Below are positions 40,059 through 62,524 of a stretch of DNA of 64,000 bases, one piece after another. The first letter of the stretch is position 1; the number at the start of each line of letters is the position of its first letter. The position numbers and the translations under genes were made by a program. The stretch lies in assembly GCA_977017575.1 (NCBI GenBank), contig CDRNVI010000185.1:1-64000 (forward strand). Direction: 5' to 3'. Source of the stretch: Paramoeba atlantica. Its lineage: Eukaryota > Protista > Discosea. The notes beneath the pieces were generated by a model. The model was not told the DNA's origin and made no database searches. It saw only the letters and a list, made by a program, of their open reading frames with translations.

Positions 40059-40133
40059 AGAAAAAGGGGAGGGGGTCTAAAAAATAAGAAGTAATAATTT
40101 TTTTTAGTATAAAGGTTGTAAAAAAAATCGGTA

Positions 40134-41090
40134 GTGTTTCCTCATGAAAAAGAAAACGCGGACTTTGGTAAACGAAAAGCTCTTGCGCGAAATGAAATGT
40201 ACGCGACAATCGGGAGGTATACTTGTGTAGCTACTGTATCATGTGGTACGTACAAAGGTGAAGCCTATTCTTTTAGTATTGATAGTTGGCTTTTTTTGCA
40301 AGACTTAGATAGCCACATACAGAGACACCTTTTGTTTATTCCGATTTCTTTTTGCCACCTGACAAAAATGTTTGAGTTCTGTGCATTAGCCTGTGCATTA
40401 CGTGCAGCTGAGGAACAATCTATAAGTCGTCCTTGTGCAGCGAAGGTGAGCTCTATTACCGTGCCGCAAGAGTACGATTTAATAAGACTTATTCAAAATA
40501 TGCAGGAAAGACCCCCTAGCTGGAACACCGACACACCTGCATGCGAGTGGGAAGGCGTTGAATGCGACGAGAAGAATCAAGTTAAAGAATTCAGTTGGTG
40601 TTTTGAAAACCTAGGATTCTTAGTTTGGAAATATTTGCCACAGAGTTAAGTTTCTTTTCGCATGCAACATGGCCATCTTCGCGGTGAACTTCCCTTGGAA
40701 GTGTTTCCTCCGAACCTAACGCAAATATATTTGTATGCGAATCAGTTAACCGGTCATCTTGACTTGCTCCAGCTCCCACCCATACTGGAGGTCTTGGATG
40801 TCGAAAAAAATCATTTCCATGGCACCGTCGATTTCTCATCACTTCCGACAACTTTGGAGGAACTAAAGCTGTCGAGCAACAGCGAACTCGAAGGTGCGTT
40901 TGATGTGGATATGCACAGCCCTGATTTGTATTACGACTTTCTGCAAACAAACATTACAGTCTCGGACGGATGTCGAATTCGAGAGCTCTACTTTGATGTG
41001 GATGAAGATGACGTTGATGAGTATGAAGATGAGGACGTTGATGAGGATGAAGATGAAGAGGACATGCATGTACATGATGATTTGGATTAG
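40134..41090 (+). pseudogene. LRR gene with in-frame TAA (copy 3)
   Basis: Same translated ORFs as copy 1. Confidence 0.75.
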
Positions 41091-41381
41091 TCCTGTACGT
41101 ACTTGATGTGTGCAATTAGATTGATTGTTCAATTGTATTCGATTGATTGGCTGTGTAAATTGGAGGGGCGGGGGCCTTGTTTACTGTTAGATAAATGATT
41201 ACTGTTAGATAAATGATACTGTTAGAGAAATGATTAGAAAAATACTAATACTTCTCCGAATTTTCCTGTTAAAAGTTGATATTTGAGGGGCTGCGGGTGG
41301 CGTCCCGAGAAACCGCGGTATACGATCGGCCCCCCGAGGCCTGGTCCGATAGTAATGTATACCTAAAAAATCTTTGATTTT

Positions 41382-42834
41382 GCCATAGGGATCCAGGGGG
41401 CAATCGCCAGAGTGGCGGCCAACTTCACAGGCACGCTGAAGGTCTGGGCGTACCTGGATGACGTCACCTTTGCTGGTGAACCCAAGGTTTGCGCGGAAGC
41501 CCTAGAGGCCCTCCGCGAGGAGCTGAAGCATCTTGGGCTACGGTTAAATACTGCTAAATGCAAAGTAGCTACCAGACGCGAGGACCTCTTCTCCGAGTTC
41601 TCCGGATCTCGCATGGTCCACTCCCCCGGGGGGGTCAAATTACTGGGGGCCTTCATCGGGGTGTCGGAGGCTAGGGAGGAAGAATGGGTGCTTTCCAAGG
41701 CCCCCAAGGTAATCTCCTTCCTGGGGAAACTCAAGGACATTAGCAGGCAATGCGCCTTGCCCCTTTTAAGACTCTGTGGGAGTCCTCGATGGAACTACAT
41801 CGTAAGGACCCACGACCCCCCGGTCACTAAAGTGGCCAATACCCAGGTCGACAAAGCCGTCCTGGCATGTGCTGAGGCCTTGCTCGGGGGGATGGGCTCC
41901 TTGGGAAAAACGCCGTTCTCCAATAACCTTTTCACGGCAGATTTCCTGGGGACCATCCCCTTCGCGCACAAGGCGGAAGACATGCAGGCCAAGGCGAAGA
42001 ACGCCCTACAGGGCCGACCCCAAGGCATGTCAGCCAAGGAACAGCGGCGCAACCTCTGTGAGGCCGCGTTGGGGAAAGCCCCGACGGCCACCCAACTGGT
42101 CTGCATGCGACAGACCCAGAACATTCACTCCACTAAGTGGATGAACGCATGGCCCAACAGGCCGGAGTATTACATGCGGGACCCGCAGTGGGAGACTGCG
42201 GCCCGTCTCCGGTACTTGGTCGCCCCCACCTCGGAACCTGAGCTCCAGTGCGTGTGCGGTGCAACCCTCCGCAATGAGGAGTTTTGCGTACACGCACTGG
42301 ATTGCAAAAAGGTTAAGGGGAAGACCCAGGCCTCCCGCCACAAGGAGGTCAAGGAAACCTTTCGAAACCTTCTTGTGCAGTATGGTTTCAAACCGGACCT
42401 ACACGAACCGAGGTTCGACAATGGACGGGGGCCCGACATATGCTTCCAGCTGGGACGGAAGACTGCCCTAGTTGATGTCACCGTGGTGAACCCATTGGCC
42501 CCGTCCTACGTGGAGAAGGAGGCCGCAGAGCCCTCTCATACCCTGAGGATGGCAGAGGCCAACAAGCGGCGCTCACACGATGAGATGGCGACCGCCCGAG
42601 GGATGGAATTTTACCCCTTGGCATTCACCACGTATGGGATCCCGGGCCCAGAGACTTTGAACTTCCTAACCAAGGTGGCCCGGGCTCACTCATCCGACAA
42701 GAACGGATGCATGTCCCACCTTCTGATGGCCATAGGGGTGGCCATCCAGAAAGGTAATGCCCAGATTGTACAGGCGGCAGTACAGGACTGGTACCGCCGC
42801 GGGGTACGAGGCTAGCTGGGCGATGGGATTAGGG

Positions 42835-42868
<34 letters not shown>
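41382..42868 (+). mobile_element. 5'-truncated RLE non-LTR retrotransposon, lineage A
   Basis: Open frame from 41382: WAYLDDV, CVCG...HALDC knuckle, RHKEV, GPDI...VDV (PD-D), EANK; 20-nt 3' UTR; poly(A) 42835-42868. Confidence 0.9.
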
Positions 42869-42871
<3 letters not shown>

Positions 42872-42990
42872 GTATACCCCCCCCCAATGGACCTACTTGG
42901 TTCGTCTACTGGGTCAAAATATAGAGGCAATGCCGCGTTTCATACTTCTCCCCCCTTATTAATCGCAAAAAAAAAAAAAAAAAAAAAAAA
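42869..42990 (+). repeat. ~100-nt 3'-terminal module T plus poly(A)
   Basis: CTCGTATACCCCCCCCAATGGACCTACTTGGTTCGTCTACTGGGTC...TTATTAATCGC(A)n; related copies at ~52828, ~53203 and ~58198. Confidence 0.85.
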
Positions 42991-43573
42991 CTCCTTTCAC
43001 GAGACCAAGCGCGAAACGATCTCCTAACAGATCTGAACGTGACGCTAATGCGTTCTCAAGCCAGGATGATGGTTTCGCGCATCCGCGTAGAGGACCCAGC
43101 GGATCCTTTGGTAGAGGCTTAAGCCTCTACTGACAGTCCAGTTTCAGCACGAAGACGCCATAATATCCAGGACGGGTGCTGGCCGGGTCGACAGAGTCTA
43201 TGCTCACGCCTAGCCCGCGAGGGCTAGGTACCCCAAGTGAGGTAGTACACGGGTAGTGAATCTCCTCCCCGTCGGCCAGCATCCTGTTTCGCGACCGTGT
43301 CGCTGTCGACACAGGCCCGCGCCTGCGCCCTCCCGTATAACAAGGGAAGGGTCCACAAGTCAGGCCGTGGAGAGGTCGAAAGACCCGGTCCGGAACGCGC
43401 GAATGGTTGAGGAGCCGCCTGCAGGCCGGGTGAGGCGAAGCTGAGGGAGACCTTACCCCCCTGAAAAGTTGAAAAGTTGGGTAGGGGAAAGCAGGAAAGT
43501 AGGGAGAAAGGTGGGAAAAGTATGTCAAGAGGTGAGAAAGAGGAGAAAGAGAGAGAAAAATTTTCTTTATTTG

Positions 43574-43604
<31 letters not shown>
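42991..43604 (+). mobile_element. 5'-truncated retroelement, lineage B (ORF end, structured 3' UTR, poly(A))
   Basis: LLTDLNVTLMRSQARMMVSRIRVEDPADPLVEA* is homologous to the C-termini of the long ORFs; poly(A) 43577-43604. Confidence 0.85.
43174..43406 (+). ncRNA. Conserved structured 3'-UTR RNA element (copy in lineage B)
   Basis: Multiple helices with compensatory changes relative to the copy at 47619-47856. Confidence 0.7.
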
Positions 43605-43623
43605 CGATAAAGATTTAAAATTT

Positions 43624-43655
43624 AACGATAAAGATACAGTTTCTGTACCTTGTTG
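43624..43655 (+). other. Spliced-leader (mini-exon)-like sequence at the 5' end of element C
   Basis: AACGATAAAGATACAGTTTCTGTACCTTGTTG has the euglenozoan SL core GATACAGTTTCTGTAC and ends in TTG; no GT donor follows. Confidence 0.8.
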
Positions 43656-43696
43656 AAATTTTTTTACGCAGTATTCTCTCGGGGCCCAGCTCTTTT

Positions 43697-46600
43697 ATGA
43701 CGCAAACCAATACTCCTCAGAGCCCCGCACGCTCGAACGAGGACCACCCCTCATCCCATATGAGTGCAAAGGAAGGAACTCTCAGCGTAGGCGCTCTCGC
43801 CGACGAAGAACGTGCCCACTCCCTCGGCAGTTGGGACCAATTCCAAGGAAACAAGCATTTGATTCGCGCTGTCAGCACATACGACGAACAACTCTACACT
43901 ACACCAATCCCGGAGAATATTCCTAAGGAATGGTTGGAACGCGCACGTCACATCTCCCAGGAAAAGGAAACCCCAGACACGGGCCACGTAGAGGCCGAAG
44001 ACGAGGAGATGCAGCACTGTGGAGTGAGAAGGCAGAAAATTACTCACGAGGCTACACCCACATCAAAGATCCCCGATGAAACTCGGACGCTCAAATCCGC
44101 AGTGAAGGATGCTCTTTCCCACCAAGGTCGAAACACTTCCCCATCGAAAGGAGTGACCAAAGCGGACTCGCGCTCGTCAAGGCGAACACCGGAGCCCCGG
44201 ACATATTTCTCTTCACCGCGACACGCCGCAAACCAAAATAACTTCGCTGAAAAGACACAAACAAGAGAAGAGACTCGGGAATGTCCGGCCATGGGATGCA
44301 CTTGGAGAAGTCTGCCGCACGGAGGGTCTTGGCAAGCGTTTTATAACCACGTCGCGTGTCGCCACGGAAACGGAGTTCCCGCTACCTGGTGGGATGCAGA
44401 AGGCCGATTTCTTTGCAACTTATGCGGGCGCCATTATGACATCAACAAAAGGGAAGCTCATCCACAAGCCTGCAAAGGGAACGTTGCGAACCCCCAAATC
44501 CCATCGCGCGCAGCACACTCGAGCGTCCCAAGCCACCTTCCGGGGACTCAAACTCATCACTCTGAACTTCCCTCGCTATCCTCTATCTGCACGCTGCGCC
44601 TGAACACTTGCAAGGACGTACCTCCACGTTGCCGTCAACTGTGGGGAGAAATTATCACCAAAGCAGCCCAAAACGCAGTCACCGAAAACTCTACAGCCGC
44701 GTGGACCCTATTCGCCATGCTCCCCAAGTGCTTACTACCCGCCCCACACCGAGGAGGACGTAAGAACCACACAACTTACGCATCATACGTCCAGAAGTGC
44801 ATGAACCGATGGCTCGCGCAAGATTATGTCTCCCTATGGAATGAAGCAGTAGACAACGCACTCAAGAAACAATCTGTAGCCCCTACAACCGTTCACGACG
44901 AAGAGGAAAAGGCAGCTATCCGAGCAGAGCTTCTAGCTCGACAAGGCGAGTACTCTAGGGGTATGGCTGCACTCACGGCGGATGCTATGGCCCCTGACGA
45001 CGAAGATACACTCCTCAAACTTCAGAGCAAGCACCCGCCCCGACATCCAGACAGTGACATCATCGACTATACGCCTCCGCCCACAGCGCCCCTAATAATG
45101 GATGAACGCGTGGTAGCGAAAACTATCAAGAGCTTTCACCGGGGATCCTCGTCCGGAACCATGGGTTTACGACCCGAGCACTTGCAAGCTGTACTCCTGG
45201 CGCACGTAGATAACACCGTGAAACCCCTTACTGCCCTTAAAAACCTCGTGAATCATCTACTAGCCGGGAAAGCACCCCTAGAGGTACAACCATATTTTGC
45301 GGGAGCCAGACTTTGCGCGCTTAAAAAGGGCGAAAATGACGTCCGCCCCATAGCAGCGGGAGAAACGATACGTCGATTGGTAAGCAAAGCGGCTTGCAAT
45401 GCAGTGAGGAGCAAAGCCAGGGAATTTTTTAAGGGACTACAGTTCGGCGTCGCGACACCGGCCGGTTCGGAACGAATAATTCACACTTGCCGGCACGCAA
45501 TGACAATTCATACGGACAACCCCGACATGGTATTATGTAAAGTCGACCTAAGCAACGCATTCAACAACGTTAGCAGAGCAACTTTCTTGAAACTTGTAGG
45601 CGATCATTTTCCGGAATTGTTCCCCTGGGCTAGCTGGTGCTATACGACAACTAGTGCTTTGACCTATCGTTACCACACACTCCTTTCGGATGAAGGCGTC
45701 CAACAGGGCGATCCCCTGGGACCACTTTTCTTTTCACTGGTCTCCTTGGAACTTGCAAAAGAAATCTATCACCAGGCCGACCTGGACTTGCAGCTATGGT
45801 ACCTAGACGACGGGATTCTCATTGGCAGGGCAGAAGACGTCAGGAATTCGTTGGATACAATCGCCAGAGTAGGTCCGCGATGGGGCCTATATCTGAACAT
45901 GTCCAAGTGCGAAATAATCACCCCCCCTGCCTCGGCTAACGTTGTAACCATATTTCCGGACATACCCGACGCCAAAATAAACGTGTGCGGTAACTTTAGT
46001 GTCCTAGGAAGCCCAATTGGGTCCCCTGAGTACTGTACTGAATATCTGCTGACACACGCGGTTGAGCCCGCCGAAATGGCCCTTGATGCCATAACCAGAA
46101 TCCGGGACCCCCAGGTAGCCATGGCGCTAATTCGACAATGTGCTGGATTCTGCAAATTGGTACATGCTCTACGAACGACGCCCCCGCAATCAGTTATGAA
46201 CCTCTGCAAGCGGCTCGACGACTTCCTAATGCACGCGGTCGAATCCACTCTATGTCCTTTGCCTCCCTCCGCACGCGCCCAAATTCAGCGCTTGAAAAGA
46301 CACGGAGGTTTCGGTTTAAAATCGTCGACCGTGCACGCATCCTCCGCTTACGCCTCCTCTGTAGTTTTCGCGGCGGCCACGGACTCATGGGATGCTTCAG
46401 AAGTGGAGGGCTTTCTACAATCGATTGAAGACGTGAACTCGAAAGTTGGTATCAGTCTACTCGACTCAAACGGACTCGTGCGTTCCATCCCGCGCCATAA
46501 ATGTGAAGAACTCTCCCCCAAAGCTCGCTTCACCAAGAGATCTCGCGAGGGAGAAACCAGACATCCCTTTGAACCCGCAAATCCGCCTTCCCTTCCTCGT

Positions 46601-47563
46601 GACCGCGCATTGCCTCATTCCGAAGACTTTCCACACGATACAAACCCCCTTTACGCATCCGAAGATTGCGTTGACGCGGATCCACCCGACTGGGCAAGTA
46701 ATAGCGTCCCCCGCCAAAAAGACATAAGTTACGCGATCTCTGCCACAGAGTTCTCGCACGCATATGAAAACGCCGACGCCCGGACTCGCGCACGCTGGGC
46801 TTCTCAGTGTGGTAAAGGAGCAAGCAGCTGGGCGTTCGTAACTCCTTCCAGAGACACGGGCCACGCCTTTAACCCCACAGAATTCCGCATCCTATCCAGC
46901 TGGTGGTTAGGTGTGCCCGTGTACGGGGAAGAAGGTACATGTCCCAAGGGGAACTGCACACTCCCATTGGACATACACGGCGATCACGCTCTCACATGCA
47001 AGCACGGGGACGGTATCATCGGCCGTCACAACGCCTTGGCCGATCACTTTGCCGATACTTGCAGTAACGCACGCCTAGCTCCCCAACGGGAAAAAAGCCT
47101 CGGGAACCGGGGCCCCGGAGGCGCTCTGACTAGACCCGGGGACGTCTTCCTTCCGAGTCTCTTCCTCGGGAAACCTATCGTGCTTGACTTCGCGGTCACT
47201 CACGCCCAGCAATCTAAATACACGGACACAGTCCGAAATGCTAGCTGGGTGGCCGCGGGGTCCTTCGCAGAGCATTATGCCTCAGAGCAGAAAGTCCGAC
47301 AACGCCGTGAATCTGAAGATGCCGGAAGCGATTTCACAGCTATGGTGGTCGAGAGCTATGGCTCTTGGAGTGCCAGTGCTTTAGCCGTTCTCCGGAAGGT
47401 TGGAGAACGAAGGGCAAAAGCGTCCAACGGTATCTTGACAGACGAGGCCTCTACGCTCCGTCTCGTGACCGACATGAACGTAACATTGATGCGTTGCCAG
47501 GCACGCATGATGATTACGCGCCTGCCGGCTGTGGACCCCTTGCCCCCTTTAATCGAGCAATAG
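43697..47563 (+). CDS. Full-length CRE/SLACS-type retrotransposon ORF: LsmAD-like, zinc fingers, RT, zinc knuckle, RLE (lineage C)
   Basis: WDQF..N...STYDEQLYTT; CPAMGC..H....H and CNLC..H...C; KVDLSNAFN, GVQQGDPLGP, WYLDDG; C-x4-C..DHALTC, RHNALAD, RPGDV..LDFAVT, VVESYGSW. Confidence 0.93.
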   Translation: MTQTNTPQSPARSNEDHPSSHMSAKEGTLSVGALADEERAHSLGSWDQFQGNKHLIRAVSTYDEQLYTTPIPENIPKEWLERARHISQEKETPDTGHVEAEDEEMQHCGVRRQKITHEATPTSKIPDETRTLKSAVKDALSHQGRNTSPSKGVTKADSRSSRRTPEPRTYFSSPRHAANQNNFAEKTQTREETRECPAMGCTWRSLPHGGSWQAFYNHVACRHGNGVPATWWDAEGRFLCNLCGRHYDINKREAHPQACKGNVANPQIPSRAAHSSVPSHLPGTQTHHSELPSLSSICTLRLNTCKDVPPRCRQLWGEIITKAAQNAVTENSTAAWTLFAMLPKCLLPAPHRGGRKNHTTYASYVQKCMNRWLAQDYVSLWNEAVDNALKKQSVAPTTVHDEEEKAAIRAELLARQGEYSRGMAALTADAMAPDDEDTLLKLQSKHPPRHPDSDIIDYTPPPTAPLIMDERVVAKTIKSFHRGSSSGTMGLRPEHLQAVLLAHVDNTVKPLTALKNLVNHLLAGKAPLEVQPYFAGARLCALKKGENDVRPIAAGETIRRLVSKAACNAVRSKAREFFKGLQFGVATPAGSERIIHTCRHAMTIHTDNPDMVLCKVDLSNAFNNVSRATFLKLVGDHFPELFPWASWCYTTTSALTYRYHTLLSDEGVQQGDPLGPLFFSLVSLELAKEIYHQADLDLQLWYLDDGILIGRAEDVRNSLDTIARVGPRWGLYLNMSKCEIITPPASANVVTIFPDIPDAKINVCGNFSVLGSPIGSPEYCTEYLLTHAVEPAEMALDAITRIRDPQVAMALIRQCAGFCKLVHALRTTPPQSVMNLCKRLDDFLMHAVESTLCPLPPSARAQIQRLKRHGGFGLKSSTVHASSAYASSVVFAAATDSWDASEVEGFLQSIEDVNSKVGISLLDSNGLVRSIPRHKCEELSPKARFTKRSREGETRHPFEPANPPSLPRDRALPHSEDFPHDTNPLYASEDCVDADPPDWASNSVPRQKDISYAISATEFSHAYENADARTRARWASQCGKGASSWAFVTPSRDTGHAFNPTEFRILSSWWLGVPVYGEEGTCPKGNCTLPLDIHGDHALTCKHGDGIIGRHNALADHFADTCSNARLAPQREKSLGNRGPGGALTRPGDVFLPSLFLGKPIVLDFAVTHAQQSKYTDTVRNASWVAAGSFAEHYASEQKVRQRRESEDAGSDFTAMVVESYGSWSASALAVLRKVGERRAKASNGILTDEASTLRLVTDMNVTLMRCQARMMITRLPAVDPLPPLIEQ

Positions 47564-47618
47564 CACGATGACGGATGTGCAAGATGGGCCGCTCAGCCGG
47601 AACTCGAACAGCTGGTCC

Positions 47619-47856
47619 GGATGCTGGTCGATGCCGGCAGGGTCTATGCTCACGCCTAGTCCGCCAGGGCTAGGTACTCCAAGTGAGGTAGGACATGGGT
47701 AGGGAACTTTGTTCCTCCCCGTCGGCCAGCATCATGCTCCGCGACCGTGCCGCTGTCGGCACAGGCCCATTGCTTGCGCCCTCTCGTACAACAAGAGAAG
47801 GGTTAACAAGGTAAGCTGGGAGAGGTCGAAAGACCCGGTCCGGAACGCGCGAATGG
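47619..47856 (+). ncRNA. Conserved structured 3'-UTR RNA element (lineage C variant)
   Basis: Same helix architecture, with covarying pairs. Confidence 0.7.
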
Positions 47857-48243
47857 TTCGGGAAAAGTCTGCCCCTCCTAACCGAGGGAGACCTTACCCT
47901 CCCTGGAAAGCTGGTAAGATTGGTAAGGGGAAGTGGGTAAGATGGGAAAGCATGTATTTGCTAGTTATATATTTTGCTGGTTTTCAAAATGGGGGGAAGT
48001 GAGGGAAAGAAGTTGAGCAAGTAGGAAAGTAAGTGAGAAAGTCATACCGTACATACATATATAAAATTAGAACTCGTACTCTTCCCCCCCTATTATCTGC
48101 AAAAAAAAAAAAAAAAAAATAGATGGTTTCTTTGAGGGGTGGAGATAAGGGAGAGAAGCGGGCGAAGTTGATAAGGGCGAAGTAAAGTAAGTAGGAAAGT
48201 AAGTAAGAAAGTGATACCAAAAAAAAAAAAAAAAAAAATCTTT

Positions 48244-48924
48244 AACGATAAAGATACAGTTTCTGTACCTTGTTGAATTATTTCCCCTTTTCTTCCATAC
48301 ACCATCTTCCAGACCATGGGAGGGCACCCCCCTCAAATACACTCCTTTTTGTCGGCATCCCCCTTCCCCGTCTCGTCCCATCACCCCCCTGCGCCGCATC
48401 CCCCCACATCACCCTCCCTCCGCAGTGCGCTTGCCCCCCTGTTGTGTTTCTCTCTCGCGTCCCCCACCCCCGTGTCAGCAGCCAAAAGTATACAATACTT
48501 GCTCACGGGGTGGGGGCAGAGTTCCTGGCAGATGGGCCCGTGCTTCGCCTCCTCTCGCCCCTGCGTCAGTCCCCCCGTGTCTCTCTCCGCGCTCTTCTCC
48601 CTCGGCGTGACGACGTCTTTGTGTTTCGTGGCCTCCACGTCTCCCACCCTCGTACGGCAACCAAAAGTATTTATTACTGCTAACGGGGTGGGAGCGGAGG
48701 TGCAGGACCATACGGGCCTGGGTGCATGCGGATCGGTGAGTGGGGTAGGGAGTGAGGGAAGGGAAGTACGAGAGGGCTAAGAGGAGTAGGTGTGGAAAGT
48801 ATGGGGAGTAAGGGAAAGCGAAGGGCCGTAAGTGTGGAAATTGTGGAAAAGTTGGACTCCATACATAAAAAGTTAGACTCAATACTATTCCCCCCAATTA
48901 TTTGCAAAAAAAAAAAAAAAAAAA
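48244..48924 (+). mobile_element. SL-headed, poly(A)-tailed, apparently non-coding SINE-like retroposon
   Basis: SL at 48244-48275; pyrimidine-rich then purine-rich body with an internal ~60-nt duplication; ends TACTATTCCCCCCAATTATTTGC(A)n, like the autonomous elements. Confidence 0.7.
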
Positions 48925-49067
48925 GGGCAAAGTTTGGAAGGCGCGGATGGATGCTCGGGGGGGGGGAAGTGAGGGAAAGAAGCGGGTGAAGTCGGAAAGT
49001 CGCGGATGGTTTCTTTGAGGGGTGGAGATAAGGGAGAGAAGCGGGCGAAGTTGATAAGGGCGAAGTA

Positions 49068-49099
<32 letters not shown>

Positions 49100-49103
49100 A
49101 AAA

Positions 49104-49715
49104 CCTTTGCGGAGCGCTACCGAGAACAAGAGAAGACAACGGGAAGAGGCTAACACGGCTGGGTACAAGTTCGCGGCAATGGTAGTAGAGTCCTATGGCG
49201 CCTGGAGTCCCAGCGCCATGGCGGTTCTTAGGGAAATTTCAACTAGAAAGATGGCGAACTCAGGGGATACCCTCCCTAAAAGCGATGCCTTGCATCACCT
49301 CCTTTCATCTCTCAACATTACCCTCATGAGGTCGCAAGCTCGCATGCTTGTATTACGATCCCCAGCGGCGGTCCCTGACACAGTGCTCTTAGGTTACGGA
49401 AAAGAGGAGTAGGAGCTCAGTAGGAAAGTGAAGGAGTCGGTGTCAAGGGAGGAGGCCTCGTTTCTATTTGCTGGTTTTCTCGGGTGGTTTCTTTTTGGGG
49501 CTTTGGGTATTCGTTTTTTGGGGAAGGTTTTTTTTGGGGGTGGGAACGGGTTCTTATTTGCTGTTTTTTGGGCCGTTTGCTCGGTTGAACATTCTTTTAC
49601 TTTTCGTACAGTTGCTTGTTTCTATTCTGAGCCTAACTTTAAAAAAAAAATGTGAAATTGCTAATTTGATTGCTTGTTTACAAATCATATAAAAAAAAAA
49701 AAAAAAAAAAAAAAA
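49104..49715 (+). mobile_element. 5'-truncated lineage D copy
   Basis: Near-identical to 52245-52830 (…VVESYGAW…YGKEE*); poly(A) 49691-49715. Confidence 0.88.
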
Positions 49716-49974
49716 CCCGTGTCGCTGTCGACACAGGCCCGCGCCTGCGCCCTCCCATATAACAAGGGAAGGGTCCACAAGTCAGGCCGTGGTGAGGTCG
49801 AAAGACCCGGTCCGGAACGCGCGGATGGATTGGGCGTGGATTGCTTCCTTTTTTATTATTATTGTTATCAGAATCATAAATAACTTAAGGCAGGTTGAAT
49901 TACTAGTTTTGGGCTACAACATGTGAAATTGCTAATTTGATTGCTTGTTTACAAATCAAAAAAAAAAAAAAAAA

Positions 49975-52947
49975 GACTTTGAATCGTAAGAAACGTGCTG
50001 CGCAAGCAACAAGCCTAGAAGACGAGGGGAAGAAAGCGTGTCTTCGCGCGGAGCGACTGGCCCGCGACGGAGAACTTTCTCGCGCCATGACCGCACTGAC
50101 TTCTTCGCCGCTAGCACCAGACGACGACAACACGTACGCCAAACTTCAGGCCAAACACCCCCCACGAATCTCCGCATCCACAACATCCCCCAGCTTAACT
50201 CCGGAAACAGAACCACTCAAAGTCACCGAGGAAGAAGTCGCAGCTGCGCTCTCAACCTTCCACAGAGGATCATCAGGTGGCGCACTTTGCCTCCGCCCAG
50301 AACACGTGCAAGCGGCAATGCAATATCACAATGACGGGCACACAAATCCACTGGGCACGCTCACAAATTTCACCAACCATATGCTCGCTGGGAAGTTACC
50401 ACTCGACGTTCAAGACCACTTTGCCGGAGGAAGGCTATGTGCTTTGGAAAAGGGAGAACACGACGTGCGCCCAATAGCCGCTGGAGAAACGCTCCGCCGT
50501 CTGGTGAGTAAAGTGGCCTGCCTATCAGTAAAAGCGCGAGCCCGCAAAATTTTCAAAGGCCATCAGTACGGGGTAGCCACGCCCGCCGGGGCCGAGCGAG
50601 TTATACATCTGTGTCGCCAGGCCTTTGCTGCTCGCACGGAAGATGACGACTTTGTTCTCTGTAAAATCGACCTACGTAATGCCTTCAACCAAGTTTCAAG
50701 GGACTGGTTCATAGCACTAACACGCGAGCATTTCCCCACGCTTACTCCTTACGTCGAATGGTGCTACACTTCGGAAAGTAAGCTTACCTTTGGAACACGC
50801 GTTATTAAATCTCGTGAGGGTGTCCAGCAAGGGGACCCCTTGGGCCCTCTTCTTTTCTCGTTAGTCATGAGGGAAGTCGCCTCAGAAATTCACGCAGCAG
50901 CCCCCAAATTAGACCTAAACCTCTGGTACCTGGATGATGGCGTTTTGGCTGGCACTTCCTGTGATGTGCGACACGCGTTCGACGTTATCGAAATGAAGGG
51001 TCCACAATGGGGCCTACACCTCAACGCTGCAAAATGCGAGATTATTACCCACCCAGCATCTTCTCATCGTTCTTCTGTTTTTCCCGATCTCCCTGGCCCT
51101 AACAAAAACCTCGAAGGCAATTTTTACATTCTGGGAAGCCCCGTTGGATCGCCAGAGTTTTGTCGTGAATATCTCGTCAACAATGCAGTCGAAATGGCAG
51201 AAGATTCTCTGGACGCTATAACGCACCTCGAAGACCCCCAGGTTGCCTTATCCCTCATTCGTCACTGCACTGGCTTCTGCCAGATGGTTTACTCCCTACG
51301 AACAACCCCAACATCTGAACTTCGGGATCTCTGTCGGCGCTTGGACGACGCCGTGCAACGCGCGGTAGAGAATTTTTTCCGTCCTCTGACCCCCGAGGCC
51401 CGCCGTCAAACACAACGAGACAAGCGATTTGGCGGGTTAGGACTCCGTTCCGCGGAAGAGCACTCTACTTCAGCCTATATCGCCTCTGTCGCATTTGCAT
51501 CGGAGCTAGATCGCTGGGACCCCACGGAGGCAGAAGGTTTCGAAGAAGCCGTAAGCGATGTCAATAAAAGGGTGGGGAAAGACATCGTAGACATTCAATC
51601 AGGGAGAATACCGAAAGGTTTCGCCTTGTCATCCACTCCGCCTTTCAGTAAACGTGGCATTACAGAATCCAGTACCGAATCAGTAATCCCTCGGCAACGA
51701 GATCTAAGCGATGCAATATCATCTCACGAGTTTCATCAAGCACTCTCCCTCGCTGACCCACGTACGAGGGCTCGATGGATTTCGGAAACGGGGCACGGAG
51801 CAGCAGAATGGGCTTTTGTATTGCCGTCGAAAAAGAACGGCCACGCTTATACCCCAACCGAGTTTCGGACTCTGGTACGTTGGTGGCTAGGGGAGCAAAT
51901 ATATCCGGGTCCCCGATCTTGTCCCATGGAGAAGTGCACCCAACCGTTGGGTCCTGAGGGCGATCACGCATTGGCTTGCAAAAGTGGACATGGTATCACC
52001 TCGCGGCATAATGCCCTGGCCGCAGAATTTTCTTCTGAATGTTCTAAGGCTGGGTTCACTACCCAGAGGGAAATGAGCTTGGGAAACAAGGGGCCGGGGG
52101 GCGCCCTCACCAGGCCTGGTGATGTCTTCATCAAAAATTTCGGGCTTGGCGAGGGTCTTGTGCTTGACTTTGCCGTCACCCATGTACAGCAACAAAAATA
52201 TACGGACTCAGTCCGTGACGCTAACGGGGTGACGGCCGGGTCATTTGCGGAGCGCTATGCTACCGAGAACAAGAGAAGACAACGGGAAGAGGCTAACACG
52301 GCTGGGTACAAGTTCGCGGCAATGGTAGTAGAGTCCTATGGCGCCTGGAGTCCCAGCGCCATGGTGGTTCTTAGGGAAATTTCAACTAGAAAGATGGCGA
52401 ACTCAGGGGATACCCTCTCTAAAAGCGATGCCTTGCATCACCTCCTTTCATCTCTCAACATTACCCTCATGAGGTCGCAAGCTCGCATGCTTGTATTACG
52501 ATCCCCAGCGGCGGTCCCTGACACAGTGCTCTTAGGTTACGGAAAAGAGGAGTAGGAGCTCAGTAGGAAAGTGAAGGAGTCGGTGTCAAGGGAGGAGGCC
52601 TCGTTTCTATTTGCTGGTTTTCTCGGGTGGTTTCTTTTTGGGGCTTTGGGTATTCGTTTTTTGGGGAAGGTTTTTTTTGGGGGTGGGAACGGGTTCTTAT
52701 TTGCTGTTTTTTGGGCCGTTTGCTCGGTTGAACATTCTTTTACTTTTCGTACAGTTGCTTGTTTCTATTCTGAACCTAACTTTAAAAAAAAATGTGAAAT
52801 TGCTAATTTGATTGCTTGTTTACAAATCATATACCCCCCCCAATGGACCTACTTGGTTCGTCTACTGAGTAAAAATATAGAGGCAATGCCGCGTTTTATA
52901 CTTCTCCCCCCCTATTTATTGCAAAAAAAAAAAAAAAAAAAAAAAAA
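49975..52947 (+). mobile_element. 5'-truncated RLE non-LTR retrotransposon, lineage D (RT plus RLE intact)
   Basis: The frame is open from the poly(A) junction to 52555: KIDLRNAFN, GVQQGDPLGP, WYLDDG, DHALAC, RPGDV..LDFAVT. Ends with module T plus poly(A). The listed ORF start at 49937 lies in the previous module. Confidence 0.9.
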
Positions 52948-53328
52948 CACAGGCCCGCGCCTGCGCCCTCCCACATAACAAGGGAAGGGTTCACAAGTCA
53001 GGCCGTGGAGAGGTCGAAAGACCCGGTCCGGAACGCGCGAATGGATTGGGTCTGGATTGCTTGTTTTTATTTTTACTGTGTCTTGTTTGTCGTATATACT
53101 TAGGGGAGATTGAATTGCTAGTTTTGGGCTGAGAAAAAAGAAAAAGAAAATATACTTCTGTGGAAATAAAAAGAATTGCTAATTTGATTGCTTGTTTTAA
53201 ATTCATATACCCCCCTAATGGACCTACTATGTACTTGGTTCGTCTACTGGGTCAAAATATAGAGGCAATGCCGCGTTTCATACTTCTCCCCCCTTATTAA
53301 TCGCAAAAAAAAAAAAAAAAAAAAAAAA

Positions 53329-53930
53329 CTCCTTTCACGAGACCAAGCGCGAAACGATCTCCTAACAGATCTGAACGTGACGCTAATGCGTTCTCAAGCC
53401 AGGATGATGGTTTCGCGCATCCGCGTAGAGGACCCAGCGGATCCTTTGGTAGAGGCTTAAGCCTCTACTGACAGTCCAGTTTCAGCACGAAGACGCCATA
53501 ATATCCAGGACGGGTGCTGGCCGGGTCGACAGAGTCTATGCTCACGCCTAGCCCGCGAGGGCTAGGTACCCCAAGTGAGGTAGTACACGGGTAGTGAATC
53601 TCCTCCCCGTCGACCAGCATCCTGTTTCGCGACCGTGTCGCTGTCGACACAGGCCCGCGCCTGCGCCCTCCCATATAACAAGGGAAGGGTTCACAAGTCA
53701 GGCCGTGGTGAGGTCGAAAGACCCGGTCCGGGACGCGCGAATGGATTGGGTCTGTATTGCTTGTTTTAGTTTTTACTGTTTCTTGTTTGTAGTATATACT
53801 TAGGGGAGATTAAATTGCTAGTTTTGGGCTGAGAGAAAAAAACAAAAGGTACATCTGTGGAAACAAAAAGATTTGCTAATTTGATTGCTTATTTTCAACT
53901 CGTAAAAAAAAAAAAAAAAAAAAAAAAAAA
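53329..53930 (+). mobile_element. 5'-truncated lineage B copy with an alternative distal 3' UTR
   Basis: Same truncation point and ORF end as 42991; structured element 53512-53744; diverges after CGAATGG. Confidence 0.85.
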
Positions 53931-53942
53931 GTTGGACTCCAT

Positions 53943-53973
<31 letters not shown>

Positions 53974-56900
53974 CGTGACGAGAAAAAAAATACGTGACGA
54001 GCACGAAGACAGCGTGACACCTGAGCCCACTCAAAACGGTAAACAAAAGCGCCGCCGAGAAATAGCGAAAAGCTTCTCGAATTATTTTCCTACGACAGGT
54101 CACCGGACAGACAAAACACCAAGCGGCAAATACCAACTTCCTCCGTCTGTAGCCGCATTCCGCAACACGCCTCAGGACTCTTTGAAAACTTGCCCAGTTA
54201 AAGGGTGCGTGTGGAAAACACTCGCTCATGGCGGCAGGTGGCAAGCTTACTACAACCACGTAGCTACAAGACACGCGAATGAAGTGCCCGAATCCTGGTG
54301 GACGAACGAAGGGCGCTTTCTCTGCCAGAAATGCGGGCGACATTACGAAGAAGGCAAACGAGCAACACACGACAACGCTTGCAAAGGAACCTCGACTGAC
54401 TCTGTAGCCAATCCCGCGAATAACTTGACGCAGAGTTCATTGGACCACGGTTCGCGCAGCACCGATGTCTCACAGAGTGTCCAACCTCTTCCTTTACCAT
54501 CGCTTTCTGATATTTGCATGACTCCTATCAACACTTCTAGGGATGTTCCATTCCGATGCCGCTACCAATGGGCGAAAACGCTCACCGATGTATTATCCTC
54601 CGTAGCCAGCGAGAACTCCGTAGCGGCATGGACCCGTCTCGGCATGCTGCCTAAATGCGTTCTACCGGCCCCGAACCGCGGGGGGCGCAAAGGTCGTCTT
54701 TCTTATGCCTCACATGTGACAAAAAGCCTAGAAAGGTGGGGAAAAGGGGAATTTACCGCTCTGTGGATTGAAGCGACCAAAAACAACACGAAGTCGTCGC
54801 ACCCATCAACCAAAGACCAAGATCAAGACCAGGAGCTTGCGCAAGAAGTAAGAAGGGCAAAAGAACGATGCGAAAAACTTGTACGCCAGGGTGAAGTCTC
54901 TCGTGGAATGAGTGCACTAACGGCGGCACCCTTTGCACCTGACAACGACGAAACGTACTGCAAGTTGATGGCAAAGCATCCCACTCGTGCGCAGGACTGC
55001 ATGCTTCAAGATCTCCCGTACCCTAACGCACCTCCCTTGAAAGTAAACGAAGAAGAAGTTAAGCACGCTTTGGGCAGCTTTCGCAAGGGATCATCTGGCG
55101 GAACGATGTCGCTGAGAGCTGAGCACCTTCAGATAGCACTACGTGCCCACGTGGACGAGAAAGTACACCCTCTCACCGCTCTTACAGACGTAGTCAATGT
55201 GCTTCTTTCTGGAAAAGCTCCATTCGAGATTCAGGAACGTTTCGCTGGGGCCAGATTGTGTGCACTTCAGAAAGGAGAATGTGACGTCCGACCTATAGCC
55301 GCAGGCGAGACAATCCGTCGTTTGGTTGGTAAAGTGGCATGTCTAACAGCCAAGAAAAAAGCTAGTCGCTTGTTTAAAGGAATACAGTATGGGGTTGCCA
55401 CGCCAGCCGGATCGGAGAGGGTGATCCACCTCTGCCGACAGACTATGTCCCGCCATGCCGATGACACGAACTTTGTGCTATGTAAGGTGGACCTAGCGAA
55501 CGCGTTCAATAGAGTATCCAGATCTGCGTTCATCGCCTTACTTCGCAAACATTTTCCAGAATTGTCAGCATGGGTGGAGTGGACCTACTCCACGGATAGT
55601 CTCCTAACTTACGGTTCCAGAACTCTTCCATCATCCGAGGGGGTTCAACAAGGGGACCCCCTAGGGCCTCTCCTTTTTTCCCTCGTAATGCTCGAAGCCG
55701 CGAAAATGATCAAAGAAGCACTCCCAGGCAGTCTCCAGCTTCACCTCTGGTACCTCGACGACGGGGTAATAGCCGGTAAGGCCGAAGACGTCAGTTTCGC
55801 TTTAGAGACTCTTTCTCGAGTTGGTCCTAAGTGGGGTCTTCACATCAATACCTCTAAATGCGAAATAATAACGAACCCTGCTTTGGCACACCAAACTGCT
55901 CTTTTTTCCGATATTCCGGAACCCAAGATAAACCGCGAAGGAAATTTTGACATTCTTGGGAGCCCCATAGGCTCTGCTCAACATTGCATAGATTTCCTTA
56001 CGACACACGCCGTGGAACCGGCAGAAGAGACCCTGGAAGCTATAGAAATGCTCGAAGATCCTCAAATTGCCTTGTCATTGATCAGACAGTGTGCGGGTTT
56101 TTGTCAAATGGTCCATTCGCTTCGAACTACCCCACCACATGAGCTTTCTGCACTCTGTCAGCGCCTTGATGAAGCAGTCCTCCATGCGTATGAATGGAAC
56201 ATATGCCCGCTTAGCTCCTCAGCTCGATCACAAGTTCAACGCCCGAAACGGTATGGAGGTTTTGGTCTCCGATCTGCATCTGCGCACCGCTCAGCGGCGT
56301 ACGTGTCTTCAGTTGCTTTTGCTGCAGCGACGGATCGTTGGCTACCGTCAGATGCAGAAGGATTCTCTTCCGCAGTCCTGGACATCAATCGCCGGAGCGG
56401 AGGCCCCGTAGTTGATCCGGACACGGGAAGAGCATTAGAGGAGATCAGCTCCCCTTTTCCGACAGGATCTAGTCAAAGTACAGAAACGGACAATTCTTGC
56501 ACCCCCCGTCAACGTGCCTTGAGTGACGCAATCTCGGCGCACGAATTTTCATGTGCGTACGCAGCGGCGGACAGTAGCACTCGCGCGAGGTACACCTCTC
56601 AGACTGGAGATGGGGCCAGCAGCTGGGCATTTTGCATCCCATCAACAGAGCTTGGCCACGCTTACACACCCACAGAATTCCGCGCCCTCTCCAGGTGGTG
56701 GTTAGGTGCCAAGGTCTACAACGAGTTGAGCACGTGCCCAATTAACACATGCCAACAACCTCTCGACCTCGAAGGAAACCATGCAGTGTCTTGCAAAAGT
56801 GGGAATGGACTGATCTCCCGCCACAATGCGCTCATTACACAATTCACCGACACGTGCTCCAAGGCGAATTTATCACCTTCACGTGAGGTAAGCCTGGGGA

Positions 56901-57790
56901 ACCTAGGGCCTGGCGGCTGTCCCACGAGGCCGGGCGATGTCTTTATTCCGGGCTATGAGAAAGCTCAAGGTCTGGTGCTTGATTTTGCTGTCACCCACGT
57001 TCAGCAACCTAAATACACGGACTTAGTCCGCAACGCTAACGGGGTGGCGGCAGGATCATTTGCGGAGCACTACGCCGCTTCTCACAAGGTGAAAGAGAGA
57101 GAGGAGGCGGAACAAGCAAAACATGTGTTTGTTGCCATGGTGGTAGAATCATATGGTGCTTGGAGTGCAAGTGCCCTATCAATCCTTAGATGGGTTGGGA
57201 AGCATCGCGCCTCATGTTCCCAGGGGACTCTATCTCAAGAAGCAGCTACCCGTCAGCTGCTTCAAGAGCTTAACCTCACCCTGATGCGTTCTCAATCGAG
57301 AATGCTTGTCTCACGCATGCCGGCTGAAGATCCACAACCGGCACTTATTTTGCAGTAGCCTAAACCAAGGCTCGCGGATCCCGGCATGTTCGAAGGCTGA
57401 GGGTGCTGGTCTCGTCGACAGAGTCTATACTCACGCCTAGTCCGTCAGGGCTAGGTACCCCAAGTGAGGTAGTACACGGGTAGTGAATCTCCTCCCCGTC
57501 GGCCAGCATCCTGTTTCGCGACCGTGTCGCTGTCGACACAGGCCCGCGCCTGCGCCCTCCCGTATAACAAGGGAAGGGTCCACAAGTCAGGCCGTGGAGA
57601 GGTCGAAAGACCCGGTCCGGAACGCGCGAATGGTTGAGGAGCCGCCTGCAGGCCGGGTGAGGCGAAGCTGAGGGAGACCTTACCCCGCCCCCTGAAAAGT
57701 TGAAAAGTTGGGTAGGGGAAAGCAGGAAAGTAGGGAGAAAGGTGGGAAAAGTATGTCAAGAGGTGAGAAAAAAAAAAAAAAAAAAAAAAA
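53974..57790 (+). mobile_element. Near full-length RLE non-LTR retrotransposon, lineage E (ORF 53975-57358)
   Basis: Zinc fingers CPVKGC..H and CQKC..H..C, RT (WYLDDG), RLE (RPGDV..LDFAVT). The ORF opens directly after a poly(A) with GTG, so it is probably 5'-truncated. Structured UTR 57401-57633. Confidence 0.9.
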
Positions 57791-58313
57791 TCCTATGGTG
57801 GTGACATAGGCCACGGGTGCTGGTCTCGTCGACAGAGTCTATACTCACGCCTAGCCCGCGAGGGCTAGGTACCCCAAGTGAGGTAGTACACGGGTAGTGA
57901 ATCTCCTCCCCGTCGACCAGCATCCTGTTTCGCGACCGTGTCGCTGTCGACACAGGCCCGCGCCTGCGCCCTCCCATATAGCAAGGGAAGGGTTCACAAG
58001 TCAGGCCGTGGAGTGGTCGAAAGACCCGGTCCGGAACGCGCGAATGGATTGGGTCTGTATTGCTTGTTTTAGTTTTTACTGTTTCTTGTTTGTAGTATAT
58101 ACTTAGGGGAGATTAAATTGCTAGTTTTGGGCTGAGAAAAAACAAAAGGTACATCTGTGGAAACAAAAAGAATTGCTAATTTGATTGCTTGTTTTTAACT
58201 CGTATACCCCCCCCAATGGACCTACTTGGTTCGTCTACTGGGTCAAAATATAGAGGCAATGCCGCGATTCATACTTCTCCCCCCTTATTAATTGCAAAAA
58301 AAAAAAAAAAAAA
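57791..58313 (+). mobile_element. 3'-UTR-only module (structured element, module T, poly(A))
   Basis: Structured element 57815-58047; T module ~58198-58295. Confidence 0.8.
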
Positions 58314-59064
58314 TTTGATTTTAGTATTCACGTATTCATGTAGTATAGTATTTAGTAGTATTTACGTATTCGCGTATAGTATTCACGGGGTTTTCAACAT
58401 TTTTCCCGCCTCTATCACCAAAAACTTGGAACAAGTAATTTATGCGCTCTAAAGAATGCCAACCATCATCAAGGAATCACATGAAGCGTTTTTTGCGCTT
58501 TCATTCTTTTTGGCAACCTATGGAGACACGCGAATACAGCTGAATGTAGCAGCTGAATGAACCATTTAAAAAAGCCTCTTGATGGTAGGTTTTTGAATTT
58601 CGTGTACTATGCCCCCCTGCTTATAAGTTCCCCCTACTCAGGTACGCTTATGAGTTCCTTTTTCTGGTGAATGCTTTTGTACCCACATTTTGCGAAGCCT
58701 TTTTTTACATGTGACAAAATGTCATAAATTTCTACTCTACGTCAGCCTGCTCTACAGGTTCGTTCACTGAGCGGATATTTGTTTTGGATCCAGTTATCAT
58801 CTGGTATGCTTAAGAGTCCTTTTTCTCAAAACCGGGGAACTCATAAGCAGGGGGGGTATAGTATTTTGTTTTATTATTTTTACCCTTGCTTTCGTAAGCA
58901 GACCGATTTTTTTTTCATCACGCTTTTTTTCAGAATACTTTTTTTTATTTTTCTTAAAAGAAATTGCGCAAAAAAAAGCGGCAGATAACTAGGTACAGTA
59001 GTTCCCTTGACCGAGCAATTTATTCAACACCTCTTCCAATTTCTTTACAGCGTTTCAAAGTTCA

Positions 59065-59688
59065 ATGACTTACTCCTTTTTAATGATATGTCCGCTACGT
59101 GCATCGGATGTACACTCTTCAACGCATCCCCGGGCAGCGAAAATAAGGTCTGTTTCCGTACCGCAAGAATACAATTTGGCAAGACTTGTTGAAAGCGCAG
59201 ATAAAAAGCATCGTACCTGGGACACCAACACACCTGTCTGTGAGTGGTATGGCATTGAATGTTGTGAGAAGAAACGAGTTAAAGCAATAAGCTGGCGTTT
59301 TGCAGATTTAGGATCGTTAAATTGGAAATATTTGCCGCCAAATTTAGAGTCTCTAGAGGTGATGAAAGCCCATCTTCGTGGTGAACTTCCACTAGAGATG
59401 TTTCCCCCATCTCTCGTATACATTTATCTGTATTACAATAAGTTAACAGGTAATCTCGTCCTTTTGCGACTTCCACCTTCATTGGAGGTTTTTGACGTTC
59501 AAAGCAATCAGTTTTTTGGCATCGTAGATTTTTCGTTACTTCCAACAGGTTTGTCCGAGCTGACGCTGTCTTGGAACAGTGACCTCAAAGGTGCGTTCGA
59601 TGTGGGAATGTGCAGTCCGAGTTTGAGCTACGACGTTCGGCGTACAAACATCACGGTATCGAATGGATGTTTATTTCGAGAGGTCTAG
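59065..59688 (+). CDS. Leucine-rich repeat protein (copy 3)
   Basis: Identical translation to 31224-31847. Confidence 0.8.
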   Translation: MTYSFLMICPLRASDVHSSTHPRAAKIRSVSVPQEYNLARLVESADKKHRTWDTNTPVCEWYGIECCEKKRVKAISWRFADLGSLNWKYLPPNLESLEVMKAHLRGELPLEMFPPSLVYIYLYYNKLTGNLVLLRLPPSLEVFDVQSNQFFGIVDFSLLPTGLSELTLSWNSDLKGAFDVGMCSPSLSYDVRRTNITVSNGCLFREV

Positions 59689-62449: not shown

Positions 62450-62524
62450 AGAAAAAGGGGAGGGGGTCTAAAAAATAAGAAGTAATAATTTTTTTTAGTA
62501 TAAAGGTTGTAAAAAAAATCGGTA

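Follow-up and report, generated by a model that had tools for sequence, protein, structure and literature searches.

A head-to-tail chain of retroelement copies within one target-site duplication in Paramoeba atlantica

How does a single genomic site come to hold some fifteen retroelement modules, joined head to tail in one orientation and each ending in a poly(A) tail of its own? Such a block occupies positions 41382-58313 (16.9 kb) of the window, by which we mean the whole 64,000-nucleotide stretch of contig analysed here. A first-pass annotation of this DNA had named three possible routes: insertion aimed at the poly(A) junctions of earlier elements, serial template jumping, or mobilisation of a concatemer by read-through. 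Our analysis indicates that this chain of retroelement copies is genuine, that chains of this kind are typical of the genome, and that the block most likely represents polyadenylated retroelement RNAs copied into cDNA, formed largely at the RNA/cDNA stage. To serial template switching during target-primed reverse transcription, combined with re-copying of joined RNAs and followed by DNA-level duplication, we give about an even chance.

Layout of the block and its host repeat

All 15 predicted poly(A) ends were found at the exact base, as the last position of each module described below, and every module lies on the + strand. The tails measure 16-34 A and represent about 2% of the length of the block, yet 14 of 14 internal joins fall at a tail. 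Throughout the window, A-runs of at least 10 are confined to 42835-58313, that is, to the inside of the block; one of them, an A10 at 49641-49650, lies deep within module M8 and does not belong to the set of 15 tails. The sole T-run of at least 10 is at 107-116.

A single target-site duplication (TSD), tttgatttt, encloses all 15 modules, with its left copy at 41373-41381 and its right copy at 58314-58322 (both + strand). Because the source element of M1 shares the final three T of the left copy, the length of the TSD is 6-9 bp rather than the plain 9 bp first reported. The empty site, a single tttgatttt, is visible twice (30473-30481 and 35923-35931), and this primary target of the chain is not an A-tract. 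None of the junctions in the block duplicates the first bases of the next module. The three long modules checked (M4, M14 and M10) are colinear with copies elsewhere, the copy aligned to M10 carrying an extra 413-bp insert, which bears out the earlier reading that no module interrupts the body of another.

The block is located in one unit of a tandem repeat of 5450 bp with weak LRR-type ORFs (26789-41381, + strand; the empty sites end at 30481 and 35931). The following host unit (58323-63772, +) is 100% identical to 35932-41381 and leads into a second copy of the block, which starts at 63773-64000 (+) and continues on the contig, past the window, to 80704. Block and host unit have been duplicated together: the second block copy (63773-80704) is 99.93% identical to the first, with 1 substitution, one 5-bp indel and changes in the length of five tails between them. 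Tandem satellite-like arrays of 2.28 kb and 4.47 kb are found elsewhere in the genome.

Terminal head-to-tail arrays of 5'-truncated, poly(A)-ended non-LTR elements in the same orientation are known from Drosophila (HeT-A/TART), Chlorella (Zepp) and Giardia (GilM/GilT). The present chain resembles them in its tail-joined modules, and its 5' ends point towards the nearer end of the contig, at a distance of 41 kb. Unlike them, it is internal, with one TSD and adjacent empty sites, and was therefore not built by chromosome-end addition. A telomeric-type array was rejected as a candidate on the TSD, the two empty sites and the host sequence on both sides.

Modules, lineages and enzyme

The chain begins with M1 (41382-42868), a 5'-truncated copy of lineage A that retains the end of the reverse transcriptase (RT) domain, a CCHC motif and the endonuclease in an open ORF of 467 aa, and ends in A34. 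M2 (42869-42990), a 98-nt tail piece of type 'T2' with a pyrimidine-rich end and A24, forms a re-copied composite with M3 (42991-43604), a 5'-truncated copy of lineage E with a C-terminal ORF remnant, a 3' UTR core and A28. M4 (43605-48119), of lineage B, is full-length and combines a stuttered spliced-leader head with an intact ORF of 1288 aa (43697-47563; RT and endonuclease) and A19. It is followed by M5 (48120-48238), a GA-rich UTR piece of 99 nt that corresponds to a shortened M7-type unit (A20), by the SINE-like, non-coding and leader-headed M6 (48239-48924; A19), and by M7 (48925-49103), a GA-rich unit with a constant 5' start, more than 40 repeats in the genome and the tail A20-g-A16. 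Lineage D is represented by M8 (49104-49715), which is 5'-truncated, 99.3% identical to the corresponding part of M10 and ends in A25, and by M10 itself (49975-52947), 5'-truncated with an ORF open over 872 aa and a compound tail plus A25; between them lies M9 (49716-49974), a piece beginning within the shared 3' UTR core (A17). M11 (52948-53328) begins within the 3' UTR core, ends in a T2 tail with A24 and is joined to M12 (53329-53930; lineage E, 5'-truncated, A27) just as M2 is to M3, M3 and M12 having an identical truncation point and an identical upstream partner. A tail fragment of 16 nt with A27 (M13, 53931-53973) precedes M14 (53974-57790), a lineage C copy that lacks the 5' leader region, has an ORF open over 1127 aa, repeats its first 9 nt at the 5' end and ends in A23. 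M15 (57791-58313), a 3' UTR core with a compound tail and A18, adjoins the right TSD. All coordinates refer to the + strand.

These modules belong to at least five R2/CRE-like RT lineages with a restriction-like endonuclease (RLE), plus non-coding passengers, in line with the first-pass count of lineages. Four ORF families could be aligned (M1, M4, M14 and M10/M8), with amino-acid identities of about 55% among M4, M14 and M10 and of 24% for M1; the fifth lineage (M3/M12) is a C-terminal remnant recognised by eye, and M6 is non-coding. Two modules (M4 and M6) are headed by the host spliced-leader sequence.

As judged from sequence and a predicted fold, the enzyme is R2-like and of RLE type. Pfam RVT_1 was detected in M4, M10 and M14 (E from 1e-15 to 1e-19), and the Pfam search of the ORFs returned no APE family. 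The ORF profile matches Bombyx R2 at E = 7.5e-13 and L1 ORF2p at only 0.02. C-terminal to the RT, the Cys, His, Asp and Lys columns of the CCHC motif and PD-(D/E)xK endonuclease are invariant in 4/4 ORFs, and for the structure predicted from the C-terminal 287 aa (pLDDT 71) the seven best PDB matches are all R2 proteins, with MspJI next. Further traits of the R2 superfamily are present: a single ORF, a poly(A) end, 5'-truncated copies and a short TSD.

The closest named relative is a Diplonema protein (34% identity) with the source annotation 'SLACS 132 kDa protein'. SLACS, CZAR and CRE1/2 make up the CRE clade of kinetoplastid non-LTR elements (PMC12278014), which resemble ours in their single ORF, with RT followed by CCHC motif and RLE, in their poly(A) tail and in their kinetoplastid-type host. 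Unlike CRE elements, which occupy one position of spliced-leader RNA genes, the elements described here are found in a repeat spacer as well as at many further sites, and bear leader sequence at their own 5' end. Site-specificity of the CRE type, for the exon of the spliced-leader RNA gene, was rejected: the chain is in the LRR-type repeat spacer and other chains have unrelated flanks.

Open frames are kept in all four coding modules (3754 codons in total), and identity to other genomic copies reaches 98.9-100% for M4, M14, M10, M15 and M6 and 98.5% for M3, with lower values for M12 (94.5%) and M7 (92.7%). The open frames and close matches to other copies mean that at least the coding modules look young.

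Chaining and re-copied joins across the genome

Chaining is the rule in this genome. In an unbiased set of leader-headed copies, 18/20 are preceded by an A-run of at least 9, and at least 13 by a recognisable element tail; at least five further large contigs carry comparable chains. Solitary copies at random sites, which the first pass had considered as a possible majority, are thus not the norm. Full-length modules reach the RNA 5' end, that is, the spliced-leader sequence, with the first 9-12 nt stuttered and a tail directly upstream. Module lengths are bimodal, with 19/73 at 3.8-4.9 kb and 22/73 at 100 nt or less, and other chains include modules of 1, 7, 8 and 8 nt plus poly(A). Internal and terminal tails show no difference in length (median 21 vs 24). 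We found no clear piece of host mRNA; every identified module is a piece of a repeated element.

The first pass had also proposed a survey of other stacks for internal TSDs. Over eight regions, 83 of 84 junctions are free of a duplication crossing the tail boundary and one has it. At C41:360253, a truncated element of 2.5 kb starts with tgtgcat, which belongs to its own reading frame and also makes up the opening 7 nt of the flank on the 3' side of the chain, and it lies directly downstream of the A23 of an older module. Such a module, bordered by a 7-bp duplication or microhomology of its own where the chain ends on its 3' side, implies that successive insertion at a chain does occur. At C17:32702-32836, an M4 tail, poly(A) and an M6-type head follow each other without M5.

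Several joins recur. The junction between T2 tail, A24 and lineage E, with the identical truncation base, is present twice in the block (M2+M3 and the end of M11+M12; 96.9% identity), and other lineage E copies extend upstream past this truncation point. A join of M4, A29 and a next element occurs twice on C29 with differing 5' stutters, and two sets of three dispersed copies each have a junction in common. The same junction with its internal tail thus recurs in the block and elsewhere, direct support, at the level of sequence, for re-copying of joined RNAs, and so for the read-through part of the earlier proposal. The 15 modules announced by the first pass stand as 15 tails, and as a count of separate events the figure is too high: at least one adjacent pair was copied as one joined unit, two further junctions may be shared, and about 12 parts are left when re-copied pairs are removed.

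Origin of the chain

In the mechanism that we favour, an R2/CRE-like protein with RT and C-terminal RLE would nick the spacer of the 5450-bp LRR-type repeat and prime reverse transcription on the RNA giving M15. After run-off or template exit it would move onto a further retroelement RNA at that RNA's poly(A) tail, and the growing cDNA would accumulate many templates, all in one orientation, until its final end (M1) joined the upstream target via 3 nt of microhomology, leaving one 9-bp duplication around the chain. Some neighbours would have been pre-joined in the template RNA, transcription of older chains having read through an internal tail before a new round of copying, and later unequal exchange in the tandem repeat would have duplicated the block with its host unit. 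The chain shares with template-switch chimeras different RNAs, one orientation, a single TSD and no internal TSDs, and natural chimeras of two and three parts within one TSD have been attributed to template switching (PMC2104539). In vitro, R2 proteins jump from a finished cDNA to further RNAs, and in cells they give head-to-tail tandem transgene junctions (PMC11371274); serial jumping has also been described (PMC8594491). We infer that template switching, in one or a few events, produced the joins, rather than many separate integrations, and the 1-8-nt modules suggest the same, non-templated addition and hopping fitting them better than separate integrations.

Several points weigh against this reading. 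At 16.9 kb and with at least a dozen templates, the cDNA would far exceed any described chain; many truncated modules begin inside their templates, while jumping in vitro has been described from a template's end; free hopping onto any poly(A) RNA should catch host mRNAs, of which no clear piece was seen; and internal tails are as long as terminal ones. The C41 module has its own 7-bp duplication or microhomology. One long event and many A-tract insertions moreover look alike in sequence, an all-A TSD being invisible, and sequence by itself does not separate jumping from aiming. Successive independent insertions aimed at existing tails, by which the chain would grow over time into a shared landing pad, form the main rival and are possible, though the less likely of the two. 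Each module would then be a separate target-primed event, with as primer the T-tract opposite an earlier poly(A) or a nick at the chain's 3' edge; L1 and Alu do insert into older tails, where a T-tract primer pairs with poly(A), and such pairing would set the orientation. The C41 element, with its tgtgcat start and preceding A23, is one clear case, the C17 locus could be the 'empty' state of the block's M4-M5-M6, and modules that are all retroelement pieces are expected if the enzyme chooses the RNA. The junction survey argues the other way: with 7-9-bp staggers, tails of about 21-25 A and even nicks, we estimate, rather than measure, that about a third of events would leave marks, against 1/84. 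Every module of 1-8 nt would need a full integration, and about a dozen hits would have fallen within 17 kb while two identical empty units stayed unhit; these two units, together with the remaining 150 kb of contig, contain just two further A- or T-runs of at least 14. As the primary target itself is not an A-tract, aimed insertion also needs a second targeting mode. The 'safe-harbour array' of the first pass, shared by several families, follows only from aimed insertion and is unsupported as stated.

A retro-copy of the whole 16.9-kb chain, templated by read-through transcription of an older one at another locus, would account for the single TSD in one event and has a smaller-scale parallel in the re-copied joins, but it is very unlikely: the M4-M5 and M7-M8 junctions are confined to the two copies on this contig (C185), the origin of the first chain is merely shifted, and, a weak point, the same module order was seen at no other locus among the 8 of 1359 candidates scored. 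Least probable is that an assembler wrongly strung together poly(A)-ended fragments. Homopolymers and repeats are hard to assemble and our case rests on the assembly, but two slightly different block copies were assembled, each at the corresponding position of its host unit and with an identical TSD, and comparable chains recur on other large contigs.

The chain differs from known systems in several respects. Chimeric retrogenes such as mammalian U6-L1 and Magnaporthe WEIRD/Mg-SINE/MGL (PMC2104539) also join different RNAs head to tail, in one orientation, with one poly(A) at the 3' end and within one TSD, but have two or three parts. Here there are up to 15 (about 12 without re-copied pairs), each with a full tail of its own and each derived from a retroelement RNA; the enzyme is RLE-type instead of APE-type, and chaining is usual, not rare. 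The R2 experiments involve the same enzyme class, by sequence and fold, and end-to-tail products, with excess template RNA, whereas the present chain is recorded in a natural genome, with mixed families, spliced-leader heads and poly(A) tails (PMC11371274; PMC8594491).

Same-orientation, tail-joined insertions are also produced by L1 and Alu in older poly(A) tails, through an APE nuclease preferring TTTT/A; these are mostly pairs, not chains of a dozen parts. A further, unlikely reading is that chain-building is an evolved way of life under polycistronic transcription: the enzyme would obligately add copies behind another's tail, pyrimidine-rich tail ends and poly(A) would serve as RNA-processing signals for the next module, and the chain would be a self-extending, co-transcribed 'retro-operon' common to several families and seeding tandem satellites, the 2.28-kb and 4.47-kb arrays among them.

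Laboratories exploit the serial template jumping of R2-type enzymes to build libraries and to insert genes from RNA templates. So far the habit has been known chiefly from in vitro work and from chimeras with two or three parts, and for its weight in nature such chimeras, which are rare, have been the only evidence. In this genome, serial jumping, or else strict aiming at poly(A) tails, would be the normal outcome of retrotransposition: chains grow to a dozen parts or more, joined RNAs are re-copied and chains become tandem arrays. It offers a natural system for measuring how such enzymes pick their next template, and a route from mobile elements to satellites. In the annotation of kinetoplastid repeats, what is recorded as "one element" may be several.

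Structure and setting of the chain

The block at 41382-58313 is a chain of retroelement modules (M1-M15) placed head to tail, and the 15 poly(A) ends listed for it in the first-pass annotation were all recovered exactly, with tails of 16-34 A. A-runs of at least 10 occur 17 times in the window, every one within 42835-58313 and on the + strand; the sole T-run of that length is at 107-116. The proposal that one target-site duplication (TSD) surrounds the whole block was also borne out: tttgatttt adjoins the block at 41373-41381 and its last tail at 58314-58322. The empty site is indeed visible twice, the same 9-mer standing single and uninterrupted at 30473-30481 and 35923-35931. Since ttt also precedes the truncation point in the source element of M1, the TSD amounts to 6-9 bp with a microhomology of 3 nt.

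The block is set in a tandem repeat with a period of 5450 bp, whose units carry + strand ORFs with weak LRR-type Pfam matches, the insertion site lying ~290 bp beyond the last ORF. A partial unit runs from 26789, full units start at 30482 and 35932 before the block and at 58323 after it, a second copy of the block occupies 63773-80704, and a partial unit follows to 82484. A single substitution, one 5-bp indel and five changes in tail length separate the two block copies, which indicates two real copies arising from DNA-level duplication of a 22.4-kb piece composed of block and unit. Three further empty units were found on contig C67 of the same assembly (45.7 Mb, 248 contigs). Contig C185, of which the window forms the first 64 kb, is 187.6 kb long, and its remainder contains just two A- or T-runs of at least 14.

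At the start of this contig (1-95), an 11-13-nt C-rich unit, C7-10 TGGA, is repeated about eight times and may constitute a chromosome-end repeat, unlike TTAGGG; contigs C29 and C75 begin differently, with a 10-nt CT-rich repeat. The first 25 kb also contain five copies of a ~115-bp repeat in both orientations (4933-5061, 9055-9158, 9935-10054, 11365-11488 and 24422-24533), which has nothing to do with the chain.

Proteins, leaders and 3' ends

Open frames matching Pfam RVT_1 are present in M4 (lineage B, 1288 aa), M14 (lineage C, 1127 aa), M10 (lineage D, 872 aa) and M1 (lineage A, 467 aa), the last two being truncated copies. Identity is ~55% among M4, M14 and M10, and M1 shares 24%. The annotated minimum of five lineages holds: to four aligned ORF families is added lineage E (M3 and M12), which retains the C-terminal end of the ORF and was read from the sequence and compared by eye with the ORF alignment. 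A profile of the four ORFs matched Bombyx R2 at 7.5e-13 and L1 ORF2p at 0.02. Invariant CCHC, Asp and Lys columns occur in the last 287 aa, and the predicted fold of this region (pLDDT 71) gave R2 as its seven best PDB matches, followed by the nuclease MspJI; as modelled, it resembles the C-terminal region of R2 proteins. Among named relatives, the closest is a protein from Diplonema that carries the annotation SLACS. Metagenome relatives (27-51% identity) lie on short contigs nearly devoid of poly(A), and are thus uninformative on chains elsewhere. A protein atlas search returned no clusters beyond 'hypothetical RVT_1', and an Rfam scan of the window and of one 2.28-kb array unit gave no match. 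Residues 60-104 of the M4 ORF (43874-44008), towards the N-terminus, show a weak Pfam match to LsmAD (ataxin-2/PBP1; E = 2.4e-4, 21.9 bits, under the 25-bit cut-off).

M4 and M6 are headed by a 34-nt leader that occurs 355 times in the genome; its central 16 nt, GATACAGTTTCTGTAC, match published kinetoplastid spliced leaders exactly, and the leader marks the genome as that of a kinetoplastid-type protist. Ahead of leader heads the first 9-12 nt are repeated in a stutter, with ~10 A/T-rich nt between the repeats (43605-43640), and the leaderless M14 has its own first 9 nt stuttered in like manner (53974-54006). Following the leader 3' end, CCTTGTTG, the next bases are AA in 355 copies, GT in 189 dispersed copies and AAGT once. 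Genome leader searches found no spliced-leader RNA gene or gene array; 2283-bp arrays on contigs C21 and C22, considered as such, proved to be one leader-headed element repeated head to tail. CRE-like targeting of the leader head was also discarded, leader heads standing at just 2 of the 14 block junctions. Judged by target, the elements fall outside the CRE clade, whose defining target, the leader RNA gene, is not the one used here.

Most lineage B-E modules have in common a ~235-nt GC-rich 3' UTR core (43172-43406, with seven more copies in the block), after which the tail pieces differ, and the polyadenylation point of this shared 3' UTR varies from copy to copy. Lineages sharing the core are 45% different in protein, and many truncated modules start at or within it. 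Common tail pieces end, right before the poly(A), in a pyrimidine tract (42940-42966, 48075-48100, 58270-58295), for example cttctcccccc ttatt. In kinetoplastids, pyrimidine tracts of this sort direct trans-splicing of downstream sequence. Nowhere in the genome did a search find the leader joined to the sequence that follows the pyrimidine tract and AG of the elements themselves. The dinucleotide before the post-leader sequence in DNA copies is not AG, so that splicing at that point cannot restore the same junction in a daughter copy. The idea that terminal tails are shorter than internal ones was dropped, a length comparison having shown no such difference.

Chaining across the genome

Over ~330 kb and 20 sampled sites (the first non-array leader sites in the genome leader list), chaining is the normal state in this genome. 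An A-run of at least 9 lies directly upstream of 18 of the 20 sites, and one of at least 10 upstream of 16; for at least 13, the sequence ahead of the A-run matches element tails in a small tail library. As own-genome DNA searches scored the best candidates, counts are lower bounds. Like chains with other module orders, some paired head to head, occur on contigs C29, C44, C4, C41 and C75. Lengths of 73 modules are bimodal: 19 measure 3.8-4.9 kb, 22 are of at most 100 nt, and four of 1-8 nt. A search for TSDs round eight other chains yielded just chance 7-8-mers. On C29 (58407-58818), a 413-bp insert without poly(A), from a different repeat class, splits the body of a lineage D element, as also happens on C4 near 327616-327797; element bodies are therefore not generally protected.

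The arrays of the leader-headed element (C22:137449-155736 and C21:280-9439, period 2283 bp) have an identical A9 plus 10 nt at every join, and look like a chain turned satellite through DNA-level amplification; an array of the same kind, with a period of 4470 bp, occupies C55:290794-308791. At C2:552473-553223, the reverse complement of leader bases 7-26 precedes a leader head where a tail would stand, forming a head-to-head, snap-back-like junction.

Assembly of the chain

Terminal arrays such as HeT-A/TART, Zepp and GilM/GilT are alike in look but are built on chromosome ends and have no TSD, whereas the block has one. Recombination between A-tracts was rejected, as it would not put element 5' ends behind tails. 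The closest parallels are template-switch chimeras, with two or three parts within one TSD (PMC2104539), and the template jumping and tandem junctions of R2 enzymes in experiments (PMC11371274).

The first-pass annotation had suggested that elements aim at the poly(A) junctions of earlier insertions, or else that serial template jumping or read-through mobilised a concatemer. Since an all-A TSD is invisible, the test is a duplication crossing a tail boundary, that is, bases following one tail that recur after a later tail. Whole re-copied units aside, 84 junctions contain one. At C41:360253, the chain's 3' flank opens with the 7 nt tgtgcat, which is also in-frame sequence of the preceding 2.5-kb module, with an older A23 directly upstream of that module: a clean successive insertion at a chain edge, which establishes that this route exists. 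The block itself bears no such mark. This absence, a primary target that is not A, the modules of 1-8 nt in other chains, the open frames kept by every coding module, and the jumping known for R2 enzymes both in vitro and in cells (PMC11371274) lead us to regard serial template switching as the better reading for the block, with confidence evenly poised. Against it, every module identified is element-derived, many begin inside their templates, and a chain of this length is without precedent. In a search for host-mRNA modules, the small modules tested were repeats themselves, and one 110-nt module had no other match among the best 40 of 476 candidates. That successive insertions aimed at existing tails built the chain seems to us possible, if rather unlikely.

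Joined units were also copied again, which agrees with the read-through route listed in the first-pass annotation. In M2+M3, and again where M11 ends and M12 begins, a T2 tail (the type with a pyrimidine-rich end) and an A24 lead into lineage E at one and the same truncation base, the two stretches being 96.9% identical over 548 nt; further lineage E copies extend upstream past that base. On C29, two M4 copies differ in 5' stutter and upstream partner, yet each runs through an identical A29 into the same following element. One junction is common to three dispersed sites, in two separate sets; on C4 a 55-nt module and its follower are present twice; and the adjacency of an M6 tail with an M7-type module recurs at 78-86% identity. 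Fifteen modules thus correspond to some twelve joins, or fewer, formed at this site. Among the matches scored, the block-specific M4-M5 and M7-M8 joins are confined to the two C185 copies, which indicates that the chain was assembled here.
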